From NCBI GenBank assembly GCA_964035545.1, contig CAXIUT010000082.1, positions 1-8,317 of the forward strand: a stretch of DNA of 8,317 nt, read 5' to 3'. Positions 1 to 8,224 of the stretch are shown piece by piece (within the stretch, counting starts at the first letter, position 1; each line of letters opens with the position of its first letter). This DNA comes from Bugula neritina (taxonomy: Eukaryota > Animalia > Bryozoa). The notes beneath the pieces were generated by a model. That model made no database searches and was not told where the DNA came from. It saw only the letters and a list, made by a program, of their open reading frames with translations. Both the position numbers and the translations under genes were made by a program.

Positions 1-1221
1 ATTTTTTTAAGAAGAGAAGTTCGCTCTTATAGGTATTTCTTTTCTTTTTCATTAAAATTTTATCTTAATTTTTTTTATCTATCCTAGAAATCATTTGAAG
101 AGATATTTTTTTCAAATAACATCTTTTGTTTCTAATTTTAAGAAGCATACATTTTTTCAGTTAATATTTTAATTTGTTCTTTACAACTATGCTATCTGAT
201 TTCAACTCTTTTTACAGCATTTTAATAACTTAATTTCTCCTATTATACCTTCTATTTAGTTTGTTTTAACTGTATTGTAAGCTATCTATTTGCTCTTTCT
301 AAAATTTCAAGTTTTGAAGAAACTGTTTTCAACTAAAGTTATAAATTTTATATTTTTCGTGAAGCCTATCTTTCTTATTTTTACAATTCTATCACTCTGA
401 TTGCCTTTGAATTTAATTCAGATTAAATTATAGATAATTTGGTTTTTCCTCCTTATACTTCTCTTTACAGGCCAAAAATCTTCTAATTATCTGAACTTTT
501 TTATTTCTCAGAGTTATAATAATCATCAAGTAAACTATAACGATGTTAAAGTTATTTCTTTTTATTTATTCTTTGATTTGCTACTGTTTGTTTTCCAATA
601 ATTGATTCCTATAATTGTGACTTTCTGGTTCTTGCACTTGGACTAACTCTAAATTGATAATCCATATTTCTTGAAGGACTTTGTCTTCTACCGAAAACCT
701 AACTAGATCTGATATATTAATTGCTTCTGCTTGGAAAAATAACTTTTTCTATGATACTTTAAGCTTGTCCTTCTTGTTTTTTTTCTAAACATTCGAAGAA
801 ATAGTTGTATTCAATGAAAGCATTTTTATCAGGACATTTATCTATGCGGCACATTTAGTGTTTGCTAAAAGAACTCATTTGGTTTAAAGGGAGTTGAACA
901 GTTCCTGCTGGTATTCTCCCGCTGGATGATTTTAAATATATCAATAAAGAACACTTAATTACTTCATAGTTACTTTTTTATCAGACGAATATGCTGAATT
1001 TTTACCAAAGTTTAGTGATATATTGTCAATAAAACTGAAGTTCATTGTTGCTTCTCCATTTTTTAATTATGCTTAACCATAAATATCAGTCTACTTTCCT
1101 TCTAAGTGAGAAATAAAATACATATTTTAATGCTACATGATACTGTGCAAGCAAAACGAACTTTTAGTCTTATTTTTGTGATTATCAACTTCATTCTACA
1201 TATTGATTTTTCCTCAAACAT
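1..1221 (-). CDS. NT-C2-like (N-terminal C2) domain plus long coiled-coil protein. Exons 1221-1122, 1101-974 and 953-<1; the 3' end lies outside the window (~393 aa visible).
   Basis: ATG at 1221-1219. Removing two 20-nt GT..AG introns gives one TGA-free frame (TAR=E): MFEEKSICRMKLIITKIRLKVRFACTVSCSIKI/EGKETDIYGEAELKNGEATMNFSFIDNISLNF...DKK/CSLLIYLKSSSGRIPAGTVQLPLNQ...CRIDKCPDKNAFIEYNYFFECL. An E/K-rich heptad region follows (LERANRELTIQLKQTKEKVEEEKLSYEN...). The domain call rests on the alternating beta-strand pattern and the KCPDKNA motif and is an inference. Confidence 0.8.
954..973 (-). other. Spliceosomal intron, 20 nt (GTAACTATGAAGTAATTAAG)
   Basis: GTAA..AAG ends. Retention gives TGA at 943-941; removal (phase 0) links to the 953-nt open frame that runs to the window edge. 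Confidence 0.8.
1102..1121 (-). other. Spliceosomal intron, 20 nt (GTATTTTATTTCTCACTTAG)
   Basis: GT..AG ends and U-rich. Retention gives an in-frame TGA at 1044-1042; removal joins the ATG-1221 frame to the next open frame. Confidence 0.75.
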
Positions 1222-1340
1222 AGTTATAAATATATTTAAAATTTCTGTTTTTAAGAAATTTAGATCATAAAATGTTTTATTTCATGATTAAAATGAATTT
1301 ATTGATTTAGATCGAAACATCTAATTTATAATAATATTCA
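1222..1340. promoter_or_regulatory. 119-bp divergent intergenic region (putative bidirectional promoter)
   Basis: Very AT-rich spacer between ATG 1221 (-) and ATG 1341 (+). Its function is inferred from geometry only. Confidence 0.5.
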
Positions 1341-2042
1341 ATGCATTTTTCTACAATATGCAAAGACTCTCCTGAAACTGAATATTCTTCGAATCCATAA
1401 GACAATCTTCTCCTTTGTGCCTGCTAAGACTCTGCCTCTAACTACAACTATGGTGCCAAAATTATTTCAAAAGAACTTAAGGGATGGAGGCATCAATCTT
1501 AATCTTAAAGTCCGATAGTTGAAAAAAAAATCAATCAAACAACTCCAGTGAAGAAATTCATAATAACAAGTAGAGAAGGAGCAAAATCTTCTTTTTCAAG
1601 ATTTGCCTATGATAACAAAACTTTATTAAAGCAACAACTTAAACTATACTCTAAGAATGATCAATTAGATTCTCCTGTTCAAAATACTTCTTCTACTGAA
1701 CCAATGCTAAAATAACTTTCCGAACTTTAAAAGAAATAAAGTTCAGAAAAAATGAAAGAATTTTAGATCTACAAACCTTGGAATAAAGTTAAGAAAAGTT
1801 ATCTAAGTCGATTCAATAGATCAATAAGATCACTAACTCCTCAAGATAATATGAAAATTGACAAAAACGTGGAAGATTTGATTTCTAAAACAAATTTTAG
1901 TTTTAGATTAAAAAGTCATAAAAAAGTAGGAATATCAAATTATCCTTTGAATGTGATATTCCCTAAAAAGAATTCTTAAAGTAAGTTGAAATAAAAACTT
2001 GACTCTTATCTTCATTCCAGACTTAAACTTAAATAATTTTGA
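1341..2042 (+). CDS. Hypothetical 233-aa Ser/Lys-rich protein, probably largely disordered
   Basis: ATG at 1341 to TGA at 2040-2042 with no internal TGA (MHFSTICKDSPETEYSSNPEDNLLLCACEDSASNYNYG...LDSYLHSRLKLKEF*). It fills the gap between two AT-rich spacers. No domain recognised. Confidence 0.75.
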
Positions 2043-2128
2043 TTATACATTAATCTATCTTTATTGATTTTGAGAATATTTGATCTTAAATTATGAAGAA
2101 AGTTAATTAACTAAAAATTAAAGAATAA

Positions 2129-4960
2129 TCATTGTTTAGCTTGTTAATAACTTTGGTTCAAAAAGAGTTTATTATCGATCCAGTATCCAATTATTATTTC
2201 ACCAGATCTTTTGTAAAAGATGCCATTTCCTTAGATCATATCATGATCAAATAAGCCCTCAAACATTTAGCCATTTGTTAATTTAATATAACCTTTTCCA
2301 TGCTTAGAATCACTTTTAAATTATCCATCATAGTAAATCCATTTATTACTTAATTAAGAGAAATCTTTGTAGTTAAACTATTAGCTGAATGTGACAGGCT
2401 ACATGTTATAGACTCTACCTTGTCCATTAAATTAATCATTTTACCAATGCCCTTCGTAAGCTATCATTCCATTTTAATAATAAAGTTTACCAAAACCATT
2501 CATCTTGTCATCTTTCCATTCTCCTTCATAATATCCTCCATCTTTAAAATACAAAATACCATGACCATTTCGCTAATCATTGCATTTGTAACCTTAATAT
2601 CTGCCTCTTTATGGAATTTCCTATCGAATATATTCGAGTTTTTATTTATATTATTCATATTGGAGTTTATTAGTAAATCCTGGATTTGAAAAAGATGCTT
2701 AGTTTTAAAGTTACGGTTTCTTGCTTACTGAGTAACTAACTACGCTTTAAGCGTTAAAAGCAGGTTTTTATCTAACTTTAGATGCTGAAGATGGCTTAGA
2801 GAAAGGGGATTAGTGAGATGGAAAAGCTGCAGAGTTTGTAAAAGAGCTGATAGGAAGAGGATTTGGAGGCATAAAAGTCATGTTAGAAGGAAAAACTTGA
2901 GGAGATTGACAATTTTTAGCTAATGAATCAAGTTAAGTATATCTTTTATTAACTTAACTATGAGTTTGACTGATATTTTTTTTTAGCTAAAGAGGAATAT
3001 TAGAAAGATCATCATCAGAATATTTACTATTTGATTAATGAGGAATATGTTTCTTATAAATAGGAAAACTAGTTCCTTTATTGACCTACCCTTGAAATTG
3101 AGAAGATAAAGGTTCTTTGATGATATTATCTTTTTCTTTTTTATTGAATAAATCTACTTTTCCTCTTGTTTGGGAACTTTTAAGCATTATATTGTAGACT
3201 TCAGGTATTTAATGACTAAATATAGGCTACTTGCTTTTAGGAATTTATACTTCAGATTTTTTAAATTGATCTGGTTTGTGTTTTGGATCGCTCGGGATAA
3301 AAGGACTTGCTTTAGTTGCAGAAAATGGTATAAATTTTTATTTATTTGACTATCCTTTTTAAATTTCTTTGGATCCAACTTTAATTGAATCTATGCTTTT
3401 CGATCTTTCATAGAGATTAAAAGATTTTCTAAAATTTTAAAACTGATTCACAGGAATGCCTTGATGAGGAGAATGAGATTGACTTGGTGATTGAAATTGA
3501 TTTGTTTGCAAAACTTTATTTGATTGAACTGATTAATTAAGCGGGACAGGATTTGGTTGGATAAACTGGTTGTTTGATAACTGTTGTACTGGTTGATTAA
3601 CTTGAACTGGTTGAGGTGTTTGAATTGGTTGAGTTATTTGTAAAGGTTGAGGATTTGGTTGAATTATTGGTTGAGGTTGAGGAAATTGTATCGGCTGAAC
3701 TGATAGTAGAGGATGATTTGTTGGAATATTTGATTGAATACTTCGATAGTTTTGATTGAAGGCAATTTGTTTTTGATGGATTTGTTGATGTACTTGTTGT
3801 TGAGGGATATATATTTGATTGGATTGAGCTAAAGGAATTTGTTCAAAGTTTCCATTATGACTTTGATAATAAGGTTGTTTTTTGGGAGATTGATTGAACC
3901 TTTCATCAATAGCTTGGTGTTGAACTATATTTTGTTATTCGACTTTAACTACAGCTGCCTCTTGTACGATATTTGCCTTTTTGTTGTTATCAACCAATTA
4001 TCTTTAAACTTTTTTATCTTATCTTTAAATGATTTGCCTTTATCGAGAAATTTAATGAGATTTGATATTTGATTCTGTTTCAAGAGTATAATCATCTGTA
4101 ACATGATTACATTTTTCAACTCTTTAGATTATTTGCAAAAAATTAGGTCTAGTCTTAGAATCAACTCTAAGCATTTATCCTAAAATAGATGTTAAATTTG
4201 ATGTGTAACGTTCACCTACTCTTTTAATTAACTCAGGTATCAAGTTCAAATTTGTATTACGACTTTGAGGATCATATAAATAGTTAGTTGATAGTAAAGC
4301 TAAGTCTGTTACTATCATACCAAGGATGAAAATATCTGATTTTTCTTTATCATAGTAGAAGAAATTTTGATCTTCTAGACAATTCATAATCTATGGAGAT
4401 AAATGAACTGATATTTATCCATGTTATTTGGTCCTCATAGCCTAAAGATGGTTCTTTTCAAGTCCAAACAATAGAGGTTCTGATATTTTGACAAATCCAT
4501 CTTTGTTAATAAAAATTTGATCTGCAGTTAAACATTCGTGACTTACTCCTCCACTATAAAGTGATTGAAGACCTGTACAACAACTATAGAGAATACTCCA
4601 TAAATCACTTTATTGAAAAGGAACTAAGGTATTATTTTTTGTTCTTTCTTCAAGTTACTGAGATGTATTTTTAAAGGAATATTAAAGAACAAGAAACATT
4701 TTGTATTGAATAGAACATATAAAATCTTGTTGTTTTTATTTTATTTCGACAAGAGAAAGCAAGTGATTGTTTTTTATTTGAGCTCGACTTTCTAGAAGGG
4801 TTTTAAGCCTTTCCATATCTGTTTGATTGATACAACTGACTATTCTCATGAGATAGTCTTTTTCATCTTTTTTACTTCTCAGGAGAGCATTACCATTATC
4901 TTATATTTTTTTAATCTAGAACTCTTCTTATATTTTTTCTTTTGATTCTGTTTTTCCCAT
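2129..4960 (-). CDS. 943-aa protein: N-terminal protein-kinase-like (probable pseudokinase) domain, Q/P-rich low-complexity linker, C-terminal MORN repeats
   Basis: ATG at 4960-4958 to TGA at 2131-2129, 944 codons, with no intron required. Kinase-fold landmarks are LVLEY, PFQESDLWSIL, HECLTADQIFINKDGFVKI, HLSPE, KSDIFILGMIV and MLRVDSKTRPNF. MORN units include GGYYEGEWKDDKMNGFGKLYY. The supplied ORF 4175..4387 is an in-frame fragment. Confidence 0.93.
2165..2605 (-). repeat. MORN repeat region (about 5 full repeats plus one partial) within the pseudokinase gene
   Basis: GRYEGYKCNDERNGHGILYFKD / GGYYEGEWKDDKMNGFGKLYYEN / GMIAYEGHWENDEFNGQGRVYN / [insert] / IYYDGEFKSDSKHGKGYIKLTN / GEMFEGLFDHDMIEGNGIFYKRS / GEIIIGYWIDNKL match the MORN consensus Y-x-G-x-W/F-x(5)-G-x-G. 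Confidence 0.9.
3536..3934 (-). repeat. Gln/Pro-rich low-complexity coding tract (PQP/VQP/IQP degenerate repeats)
   Basis: Translates as ...IPQQQVHQQIHQKQ...VQPIQFPQPQPIIQPNPQPLQITQPIQTPQPVQVNQPVQQ... It appears on the + strand as TTGA/TTGG-rich sequence. Confidence 0.9.
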
Positions 4961-5034
4961 TGAATAAATTTATAGATAAACTATTGTTATATTAAACTAT
5001 TTTATAAAGATAATTATATTCGGTCATAGAATAA

Positions 5035-6987
5035 TCAAAGTTGGCTTGTCTTTTTTGATTCTTGATTTCTAAGCAATCTTTCTCCTAAGCTATCCTAAGA
5101 TAGAATAGTACTATTATTATTCTTAACAGTAGATTCTGTATCAGAAACTGTCTCAGCTGCGATATTTTAGGCTATTTTAGCTGGTCTATCTTTTTTCTTT
5201 AAGAAGGCAGTGAACATTAACTTTTATAGCTTTGAAAAGGGTACTTCAACGAGCATTGTTCCTAAAAATCCGAAAAAGACACTGATAATGGCAATAGAAA
5301 AGAAGAGAGGAATCACTGTGACTTGTGTGTAATAAAAATCTACTTTTTATCCAAAACAGACTCTTTCTACGATCATGAAGTGGCAAAGATAGATCCAGAA
5401 AGATATTTTACCAGTAAAGTTGAAAAATTTAGTATCTAGAACAAAGAAAGCTAGTGTTGGTATTTCCAAAATTGTAGGTAAAATAAGGAAGTATATACCT
5501 ATTGTGAAGGATAATTTTTAGATAGATAAGTATACTCCATGAGCCCAATAAGGCCATGTATTACCTAATTGCATATCATGAGGTATCATTATTGTTACAA
5601 CCATAAAAGCTAAACCGAATATTTGACTGAGCCATGCAATCCATCTTCTTATTAACATTTGATTTCTAATTCTAACAAAAATATTAGCATTTGCTATCTC
5701 ATCTTAAGGATCATCTTTTAGTTTTTTTCTTTTTTAAAGATACTACATATGAAGTAGTCCAAGCACTAATCCCAATAGATATGGTGGACATCTGATCCAT
5801 GGTTTTATGTAAATATTAGTAAAATACTAATTCCACTTGATGAAATCAATAAGGTGAGTAACTTGTTTTATTTATCTATCAACTACTTCGTAAATATTAA
5901 GTCCTATGCCAAGACATATCATAGCTATGATAGCTAGATATCCAATAATTCTATTCTTTTTGTATAAGAATATAAAAAGTAGAGAAAATATAAATATCTG
6001 CATATCATTTTGCAGATACCATCCCCATGGAACACACATCGTTTACCCATTGTTAACTAGGTTATCGACAAAGAATATAGCTCTCCAAGCTGTTTCGCAA
6101 TAAGGTATTTGACCTAATGTCATATTTTATTTCCATAGAGGTCCGCTTCCTGTATGAATATGAACAGAATAATAGATCATGATGAGCATGATATAACTTG
6201 GCCAAAATCGAAGGATTCGATGAACGATAGCCATTGGATATTTCAAAATACTTTTTGATTTTTATCTCATGAAAGAATAAGCTACTAAAAATCCTCCAAT
6301 GAAAAAGAATACATCAACTGCCAGAAAGGCTCCAGTTACAAAGCAGAAAAATGTTTATTAAACAATTGAAGGGATTCCTGCGATATTAACATCATATTTA
6401 AGTCTTACTGAGAATAAATGACCGAAAGCGACCCAAAACATGCACATTGTTTTTATTCCATTGAATATATTTAAGTAGTTATGTTTGTAGTTAAATATTT
6501 TTAGTGATTCTGAGTAATCAAAACTTTGTATGATTTTATCAGGAATATTTTTTCTTTATTTTTTTCTTATCGCCTTTCCTCTCCATAATGCAAAAATACC
6601 CATGAGAGCTAGTAATATTAAAAGAATTATTGTAAAATAAAACCATCCAGTTTTGTCATAAGTGTAATCTTGAGGGTTAACATCAACTGATCCAACAGCT
6701 AATGGAGCTCCTAGAACTGCTTGAATTATTTGACTATTGTTGGCTAATTGAACATTCATAACTTACTGAATGTACTATTTAGAACATTATGAAGGAAGAC
6801 ACAATCCCATGAAAAGTGTGGCATTTGCTTTTGTTTTGTTGTTGATGAAGTTAGCCATGTAGTAACTTGAATTGTATGGTAGCTAGACACAGTCATTGAA
6901 ATAGCCCATTTGACCGAAGAAGTGTCCTGAGTACTATGCATACTCAAGATGTTGTTAGGCTAAATCATTGCATATATCGCCTTACAT
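5035..6987 (-). CDS. NRF-domain / acyltransferase-3 (OafA/NRF-6-like) multi-pass membrane O-acyltransferase, ~650 aa
   Basis: TGA-free frame ending at TGA 5037-5035. NRF-like Cys motifs are YSGHFFGQMGYFNDC and MGLCLPSECS. AT3 motifs are LNIFNGIKTMCMFWVAFGH (R/K-x10-H), AVDVFFFIGGFL, HRILRFWPSY, GSGPLW, CVPWGWYLQNDMQ, YIKPWIRCPPYLLG, GKISFWIYLCH and VEVPFSKLEK, with many hydrophobic segments. The start is uncertain: ATG 6987 is preferred, and an in-frame ATG also exists at 7092. Confidence 0.92.
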
Positions 6988-7149
6988 CAAATAGATTTAT
7001 TATTATTATTCATTATGTTAGAAATAAAAAGAAAAACTTTAATATTATTTCTAAAACGATTAAAAATACTTAACTAAGTTCGATTTAGTCATTTTTTACG
7101 GATAAATATCTTAAGTGAAATTATTTTATTAATAATATCGTTAAATTAG
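6988..7149. promoter_or_regulatory. Divergent intergenic region of up to 162 bp (putative bidirectional promoter)
   Basis: AT-rich spacer between the acyltransferase start (-) and ATG 7150 (+). Its function is inferred from geometry only. Confidence 0.45.
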
Positions 7150-8184
7150 ATGATGTCGAAACAAGTTGCAAATAAAAGCAGCAAGAAGTCTGTTCCATCT
7201 CCTCGTACTTCATTTCGAAATATCAAAACAAGTAAAATAACAAAGCAGATGTAGCAGTTGGCAAGTATAAATTAAAATTTATCATAATCTTTGCTGATAG
7301 GAAAGGAAAATAAATGTGAAAATATAACTTAGCTATGTGTTACTTCTCACTAATCTTTTATTACTGAAAATTAATATAAAACTAATAGAACATATTCTTA
7401 AGATTCTTAACAGCTAGAATATTTGCTTAATAAAATACAAAAACTTGATGATTAACTGAGAAATCAGAAAATAGCCTATTAGATCTTATAAATAAAAAAT
7501 AATGAAATTGAATAAATCAATTTTGGTTTAAAAAGATAGAATCGATAATTAAAAGAATAAATTCTGGTATTGAAAGATCAATCTATTTTAGTGATTAAAA
7601 GAGAATAATAAGACGCAAAGGCAAAATCTTTTTAATAATTTAATGAATAATATGATAAATAGTTTTAAAAGAAAATAACAGTAAATAAAGAAGAGATTCC
7701 TATGCTTATGGAATTACATAATTAAAATTTTAAACTTTTAAATAAAATATTCTAATTAACAGTTTCAAATAAGTCACAATAGACTCAATCTATTCAGACT
7801 GATAATAAATAGATATCTCAGAAATCTGTGCAGGTTGATAATAACTATTTAACATCTTTATCATAATTCCTTCATAAAAATAAAATAAATAAAACTCCCG
7901 AATCTATATTATCCAATTTTGAAGATTGGATAGAAGGATATTTATCAACTTAAGTTAATATGAAAATAATCCCTTTGAAATGTTAAGTTGAGTTATTTAA
8001 TTAGCTTTTGACAAAAAATAAAGAACAGCATTTATAAAAAGAAAGTCGTCTTTAAAATTTACTTAATTCTGCTCAAAAGACAATAAAGCATTTGATGGTT
8101 GAAATGAAAAAGTTTTAGCAGGCTTCAAGATAGAATTATTCAAAATATTTATAAGTTTTAAGGCGATAAAAGAAATAAGAATGA
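7150..8184 (+). CDS. Hypothetical 344-aa coiled-coil protein, the last gene before the telomere
   Basis: ATG ATG at 7150 to TGA at 8182-8184 (followed by a second TGA), with no internal TGA over 345 codons: MMSKQVANKSSKKSVPSPRTSFRN...QLEYLLNKIQKLDDELRNQKIAYEILEIKNNEIEEINFGLKRENRELKEEILVLKDQ...YLEVLRREKKEE*. It is absent from the supplied ORF track because of the many TAA/TAG codons. Confidence 0.85.
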
Positions 8185-8224
8185 TGATAAATTGATTTTA
8201 GATGATATTTTAATTTAAAATAAT

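Follow-up and report, generated by a model that had tools for sequence, protein, structure and literature searches.

Three genetic codes have been described in Oligohymenophorea: one in which UAA and UAG (UAR) mean Gln, one in which both mean Glu (Peritrichia), and one in which UAA means Lys and UAG means Glu (sp. PL0344) (PMC10553269). Among ciliates, UAR = Glu has been reported only for Peritrichia, and a single origin was inferred for it (PMC10553269). The first report of this peritrich code, as cited in PMC4967479, concerned Vorticella and Opisthonecta (Sanchez-Silva et al. 2003). The code has been stated for Campanella umbellaria and Carchesium polypinum (PMC10553269), and code predictions were run on the transcriptomes of Campanella and Carchesium (PMC4967479). 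Here we analyze an 8,317-bp stretch of DNA (contig CAXIUT010000082.1 of assembly GCA_964035545.1, filed under Bugula neritina; hereafter the window), whose genes read TAA and TAG (TAR) as Glu and terminate at TGA. This feature is real, had been read correctly in an initial annotation made from the sequence alone, and is already known as NCBI translation table 30.

At the codon level, the window agrees with table 30 in each respect and with neither of the other two oligohymenophorean codes. It shares with table 30 TAA = Glu, TAG = Glu, TGA as the sole stop and an oligohymenophorean type of ciliate, and no difference was found. Table 6, the code of Tetrahymena and Paramecium, resembles it in giving TAA and TAG a sense meaning and in stopping only at TGA, and the telomere repeat of the window, G4T2, is that of Tetrahymena; there, however, TAA and TAG mean Gln. 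The PL0344 code has TAG = Glu, TGA as the sole stop, an AT-rich oligohymenophorean host and tandem TGA stops in common with the window, but assigns TAA to Lys (PMC10553269). UAR = Glu is also found in the nonstop code of Blastocrithidia, which is a trypanosomatid in which UGA means Trp and UAA serves also as a stop (PMC12153298); the window, in contrast, has no in-frame TGA, and its telomere and genes are ciliate-like.

The meaning of TAA and TAG

Six-frame parsing with TGA as the only stop yielded the five TGA-free frames (A to E, Table 1) that had been annotated, and the terminator is TGA in all four complete ones (B, C, D and E). Counted from the likely ATG starts, the five hold 2,489 codons rather than the approximately 2,560 first given, including 120 TAA, 40 TAG and 0 internal TGA. 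Read with the standard code, no part of the window stays open for more than 133 codons.

Relatives were found by searching a 65-amino-acid (aa) stop-free piece of gene D against a representative library of 1.84 billion proteins, which returned 37 matches at 45-78% identity, nearly all of them short fragments. These fragments are the same gene from related organisms, split at its own TAR codons by bacterial-code gene calling. The contigs of two of them (P0002 and P0003) gave access to the loci L004 (17.5 kb of a 24-kb contig, run SRR6869044, GC 40%) and L001 (7 kb, run SRR31535021, GC 51%), both of which carry an acyltransferase gene of the AT3 family orthologous to gene D and, directly after it, a kinase-MORN gene orthologous to gene C. 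At the protein level, D of these two loci is 61-66% identical to that of the window, and C 49-56%. Additional D homologues were supplied by five shorter or more distant loci (L005-L009).

Because these relatives are much more GC-rich than the window and have far fewer TAA, most of the TAR codons of the window face sense codons. Over genes C and D, TAA was found opposite GAA/GAG 42 times, CAA/CAG 6 times, AAA/AAG 4 times and GAT/GAC 7 times in L004 and L001, and TAG opposite GAR 12 times, CAR twice and AAR once. By residue, 48 TAA sites have a sense codon opposite them in L004 and 48 in L001, and in each relative 21 of these carry Glu, against a background of 5.5% Glu (binomial p = 1.7e-14 each); for TAG the figures are 7/11 and 5/14, respectively. 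Where L004 and L001 carry the same residue, that residue is Glu at 13 of 14 TAA sites and at 3 of 5 TAG sites; the corresponding controls were 15/15 Glu for GAA, 17/21 Gln for CAA and 46/49 Lys for AAA. Reciprocally, the TAR codons of the relatives align mainly to TAR and Glu codons of the window. For GAA of the window, the counterpart is TAR 13% of the time; neither CAA nor AAA has TAR as a leading partner.

A likelihood comparison, with substitution tables derived from the way sense codons pair in these same alignments, pointed the same way: Glu is the maximum-likelihood reading of both TAA and TAG in every subset except gene E, whose alignment to L004 is too diverged (35% identity) to give a usable codon signal. 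For TAG, Asp is worse than Glu by 5.6 to 24 log-likelihood (lnL) units. Composition also bears on the matter. Glu and Gln cannot be told apart from the amino-acid composition of the window by itself, which is informative only in comparison with the orthologues. There, the share of GAR plus TAR in aligned columns is nearly constant (8.1% in the window versus 7.1% in L004; 7.9% versus 7.5% in L001), whereas that of CAR plus TAR and that of AAR plus TAA are not. Thus, only the Glu reading keeps the composition of the orthologues stable.

Further evidence came from 71 AT3 homologues that were aligned to gene D with TAR set to X (P0001, P0012 and P0014 were excluded as repeat-driven false matches). 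Opposite TAA of the window, these homologues have Glu in 106 of 368 cases, Gln in 39 and Lys in 20; opposite TAG, they have Glu in 32 of 98, and the GAA control gave 32% Glu. Several columns opposite TAR of gene D are strongly Glu, in particular D316 (21/34), D389 (20/35), D489, a TAG (21/32), and D502 (7/9).

On these alignments, the assignment of TAA to Glu is strongly supported; that of TAG is supported, less strongly than that of TAA, with fewer sites to draw on. In this case, one 8-kb window and two orthologous metagenomic loci suffice for distinguishing Glu from both Gln and Lys at high confidence.

Seven individual codons had been put forward as examples of Glu positions, and a direct check placed all seven (7/7) exactly where they were said to be (Table 1). 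As examples, they are of unequal value. In the MORN region of gene C, GRY[TAA]G (aa810) and TNG[TAA]MF (aa919) indeed face Glu in both orthologues, as do aa850, aa864, aa875, aa882 and aa931, while YDG[TAA]F (aa901) is a poor choice, since the orthologues have Gln and Leu there. Among the kinase motifs, the F-x-[TAA] site (aa138) faces TAG and Glu and the APE-equivalent site (aa211) faces TAA and Glu, in keeping with the claim; the hinge LVL[TAA]Y (aa114) is uninformative by itself, because both orthologues have TAR at that position. The single example from gene D, VEVPFSKL[TAA]K (D662), faces TAG and Glu in close relatives but Gln in more distant homologues.

Source of the window and competing readings

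The best explanation as a whole, to which we assign a probability of about 0.9, is that the window is a peritrich-type macronuclear chromosome end that uses table 30. From 8224 to 8317 on the forward strand, it consists of 15.7 copies of GGGGTT with 100% matches (Tandem Repeats Finder and direct reading), with the G-rich strand pointing 5' to 3' toward the end of the window, and is thus a terminal G4T2 telomere. G4T2 is the Tetrahymena-type telomere of the macronuclear chromosomes of oligohymenophorean ciliates. On this explanation, the ciliate whose macronuclear chromosome has its telomeric end here is an oligohymenophorean, and most probably a peritrich; its nuclear genes are translated with table 30, with UAA and UAG as ordinary Glu codons and UGA as the sole terminator. 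UAA and UAG would presumably be decoded by suppressor tRNAs derived from tRNA-Glu, with the anticodons UUA and CUA, and a part for eRF1 is likewise presumed. That the source organism is a peritrich is very probable, given that UAR = Glu is known in ciliates only from Peritrichia, that the telomere is of the G4T2 type, and that the relatives, a species-rich set, span 28-51% GC.

Several points weigh against this explanation. The codon assignment draws on two genes, C and D, and the relatives that were compared are related to one another, so the counts are not independent. A minority of the TAA codons (D141, D621, D662, C363 and C901) face Gln, which makes up 8.5% of the residues opposite TAA versus about 4% of those opposite GAA; such sites could reflect a one-step transition between CAA and TAA, or stem from UAR = Gln as the inferred ancestral code of Oligohymenophorea. 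As regards the mechanism and the taxon, a tRNA scan of the window and seven related loci found none, an Rfam scan of the window and these loci gave no match, and no rRNA, eRF1 or phylogenetic marker gene lies there. One of the loci, L006, starts with the apparent 3' end of a tRNA gene (L006:1-30; GGTTCGACTCCGG T-arm) followed by a T-run; as the sequence begins downstream of the anticodon, this remnant is unusable as a suppressor tRNA candidate.

A different host would change the picture most. If UAR = Glu were used here by an oligohymenophorean outside Peritrichia, it would have arisen by independent reassignment, and a second change of UAA plus UAG to Glu in ciliates, common to the clade of L001 and L004-L007, would have to be assumed. 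We consider this unlikely. Oligohymenophorea do hold three code variants, and UAG = Glu arose separately in PL0344 (PMC10553269). On the other hand, UAR = Glu has been reported in no ciliate outside Peritrichia and goes back to one inferred change (PMC10553269), the species-rich relatives have a wide GC range, as peritrich genomes do (25-46%; PMC12411067), and the G4T2 telomere of the window fits Oligohymenophorea. The window extends the known range of genetic codes only if its source proves not to be a peritrich.

A further question is whether TAA and TAG, read as Glu inside genes, might be context-dependent stops at the ends of some of them. Codons that are sense or stop according to context occur in Blastocrithidia, Condylostoma and karyorelicts; just four gene ends are visible in the window, and gene E has three TAA among its last ten codons. 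The ends that can be compared make such ambiguity very doubtful. Gene C ends with NQSY[TAA]QAKQ-TGA in the window, with NQSY[TAG]N[TAG]KK-TGA in L004 and with NQSYEHDKK-TGA in L001, so that all three species stop at one aligned TGA, and the TAR five codons upstream of it corresponds to Glu in L001. The sequence beyond the last TAR of gene C is conserved. Gene D, in which a TAR precedes the terminator by about 20 codons, likewise stops at TGA in each of the three, at comparable positions, and similarity persists past its TAR. These common TGA ends of C and D, together with the tandem TGA TGA of gene E, indicate that TAR near gene ends is sense and that TGA is the stop. With four gene ends seen and 0 TGA in the coding frames, the claim that TGA is the sole stop, and not a sense codon, is supported.

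The two other oligohymenophorean codes are both highly improbable as readings of the window. Table 6, with TAA and TAG as Gln, is the commonest code among Oligohymenophorea with G4T2 telomeres (Tetrahymena, Paramecium), and the Gln-facing sites named above, D141, D621, D662 and C901 among them, are what it would lead one to expect. Likelihood, site counts and composition nonetheless contradict it: Gln is worse than Glu by 23 (L004 only) to 59 (all loci) lnL units for TAA and by 12 to 33 for TAG; TAA faces Gln at only 5/48 sites in L004 and 1/48 in L001; and the Gln content of orthologues would swing from 5.9 to 9.9% if TAR were added to CAR. The initial annotation was right to keep the code apart from this one.

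A split code like that of PL0344, with TAA as Lys and TAG as Glu, fares no better. Lys would be natural at aa861 and aa864 of the MORN region (W-x-N-D-x, with WKDDK in the adjacent repeat), where the MORN consensus alone would also permit it; both Lys and Glu are tolerated in coiled coils; and D285 faces Lys in four relatives. The orthologues, however, have TAG and TAG at C861 and Glu and Glu at C864. For TAA, Lys trails Glu by 46 lnL units or more; it stands opposite TAA at only 3/48 (L004) and 1/48 (L001) sites, and AAR plus TAA would give the window 11.5% Lys, compared to 8.2% and 6.9% in the orthologues. The reading of TAA as Lys is therefore contradicted on the same three counts as that of TAR as Gln.

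Least tenable of all is the view that the frames are pseudogenes or non-coding DNA with TAA and TAG as real stops, for although chance alone produces TGA-free runs of about 330 codons in AT-rich DNA and genes A and B lack a homologue, this view is contradicted by the conservation of C and D (49-66% identity, with synteny, across 28%, 40% and 51% GC), by their intact domain order, and by a 964-codon frame longer than any in 500/500 shuffles. TGA is rare in AT-rich DNA, and in the base shuffles (n = 500) the longest TGA-free run averaged 334 codons, with a maximum of 615. Measured against that maximum, frames C and D are significant by length; length alone does not make A, B or E so. A codon model with C and D as its training set ranks the proposed frames of A, B and E best of six in each case.

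Genes, chromosome end and related loci

The window is AT-rich (about 28% GC over 8,317 bp) and densely packed. Its features are listed in Table 1.

Table 1. Positions of frames, genes, domains and cited codons in the window
Feature	Position	Strand	Remarks
Frame A	980..3	-	TGA-free; runs off left window edge
Frame B	1182..2042	+	TGA-free
Frame C	5023..2129	-	964 codons, TGA-free
Frame D	7209..5035	-	724 codons, TGA-free
Frame E	6931..8184	+	417 codons, TGA-free
Gene A (partial)	3..878	-	Likely ATG at 878; 3' end beyond left edge; Lys/Glu-rich, probably coiled coil; 19 TAA, 11 TAG
Gene B	1272..2042	+	Likely ATG at 1272, start codon uncertain; 12 TAA, 2 TAG; TGA at 2040-2042
Gene C	2129..4960	-	Likely ATG at 4960; kinase-like domain, Gln/Pro-rich linker, C-terminal MORN; 45 TAA, 11 TAG; TGA at 2131-2129
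Kinase-like domain of C (about aa 30-300)	4124..4936	-	Pfam and PDB match; TAR at hinge, F-x-E and APE-equivalent
MORN region of C (about aa 806-955)	2159..2608	-	14 in-frame TAR; Pfam MORN
Gene D	5035..6987	-	Likely ATG at 6987; NRF-type membrane acyltransferase (Acyl_transf_3); 17 TAA, 6 TAG; TGA at 5037-5035
Gene E	7150..8184	+	Likely ATG at 7150; coiled-coil-like; 27 TAA, 10 TAG; TGA TGA at 8182-8184 and 8185-8187
C aa114, TAA	4684-4682	-	Cited codon
C aa138, TAA	4612-4610	-	Cited codon
C aa211, TAG	4393-4391	-	Cited codon
C aa810, TAA	2596-2594	-	Cited codon
C aa901, TAA	2323-2321	-	Cited codon
C aa919, TAA	2269-2267	-	Cited codon
D aa662, TAA	5226-5224	-	Cited codon

Glu is encoded in the five frames by 120 TAA, 40 TAG, 90 GAA and 12 GAG, TAA being the commonest. 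The choice among the four Glu codons tracks GC content: TAA makes up 3.9% of aligned codons in the window, where it dominates, and 0.5% in L001, where GAG and TAG dominate. A translation with table 6 would place Gln for Glu at 6.4% of codons. Gene callers that use the standard or the bacterial code fragment such genes, and in large protein collections every relative is broken at its TAR codons into pieces of 44-533 aa. Five stop-free open reading frames of the window were looked up by exact match in the protein collection, which contained none of them (0/5).

The gene order (E)-D-C is conserved in three organisms of 28%, 40% and 51% GC (the window, L004:5757-11718 and L001:209-5011). Gene E has its orthologue in L004 (7061..5757, 35% identity over 379 aa), divergent to D as in the window, and gene B has a weak, 25%-identical match in L004. 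An orthologue of gene A was looked for in the related loci and none was found. Stop-free pieces of the window frames were used for the Pfam and PDB searches, and those of genes A, B and E gave no Pfam match. For C and D, the Pfam matches sufficed to name the domains, though not for reading individual columns.

Gene D matched PF01757 (Acyl_transf_3) on three pieces, weakly and below the cut-off, with the profile in the expected order. Orthologues or homologues of it were found in L004, L001, L005, L006, L007, L008 and L009 at 38-66% identity. A family search from fragment P0019 gave only two named matches, both Caenorhabditis NRF proteins, and thus provided no taxonomic anchor. The AT3 homologue in L009 (GCA_041192925.1, JBFTWQ010001406.1) is 48% identical and rich in in-frame TAR, and several other long TGA-delimited frames of that locus are also full of in-frame TAR.

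Gene C has orthologues in L004 (8689..11718, 56% identity) and L001 (2222..5011, 49%). Its MORN match (4.6e-09 on piece 2477-2572) lies above the Pfam cut-off, while the matches to Pkinase and PK_Tyr_Ser-Thr are weak and below it. The kinase piece gave weak matches in the PDB, the best being the GCN2 pseudokinase domain (E = 1.5e-4), and all were too short for reading the residue opposite any TAR. In its catalytic motifs, HRD is replaced by HEC and DFG by SEP, and Arg seems to stand in place of the VAIK lysine. These replacements, together with the GCN2 pseudokinase as the best PDB match, suggest that gene C probably codes for a pseudokinase domain fused to MORN repeats. The linker between the two contains imperfect 18- and 30-bp tandem repeats (3602-3683, reverse strand) that encode peptide repeats of the PQPxxQ type.

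Neither C nor D shows an evident intron. The spacers are very short: 74 bp separate the stop of D from the start of C (4961-5034), 162 bp the divergent starts of D and E (6988-7149), and 86 bp the convergent ends of B and C. The telomere repeats begin only about 36 bp past the tandem TGA TGA of gene E (8182-8187), so the 3' untranslated region of this gene and the subtelomere are extremely short. In this respect, the window resembles the end of a spirotrich nanochromosome more than that of a Tetrahymena chromosome.

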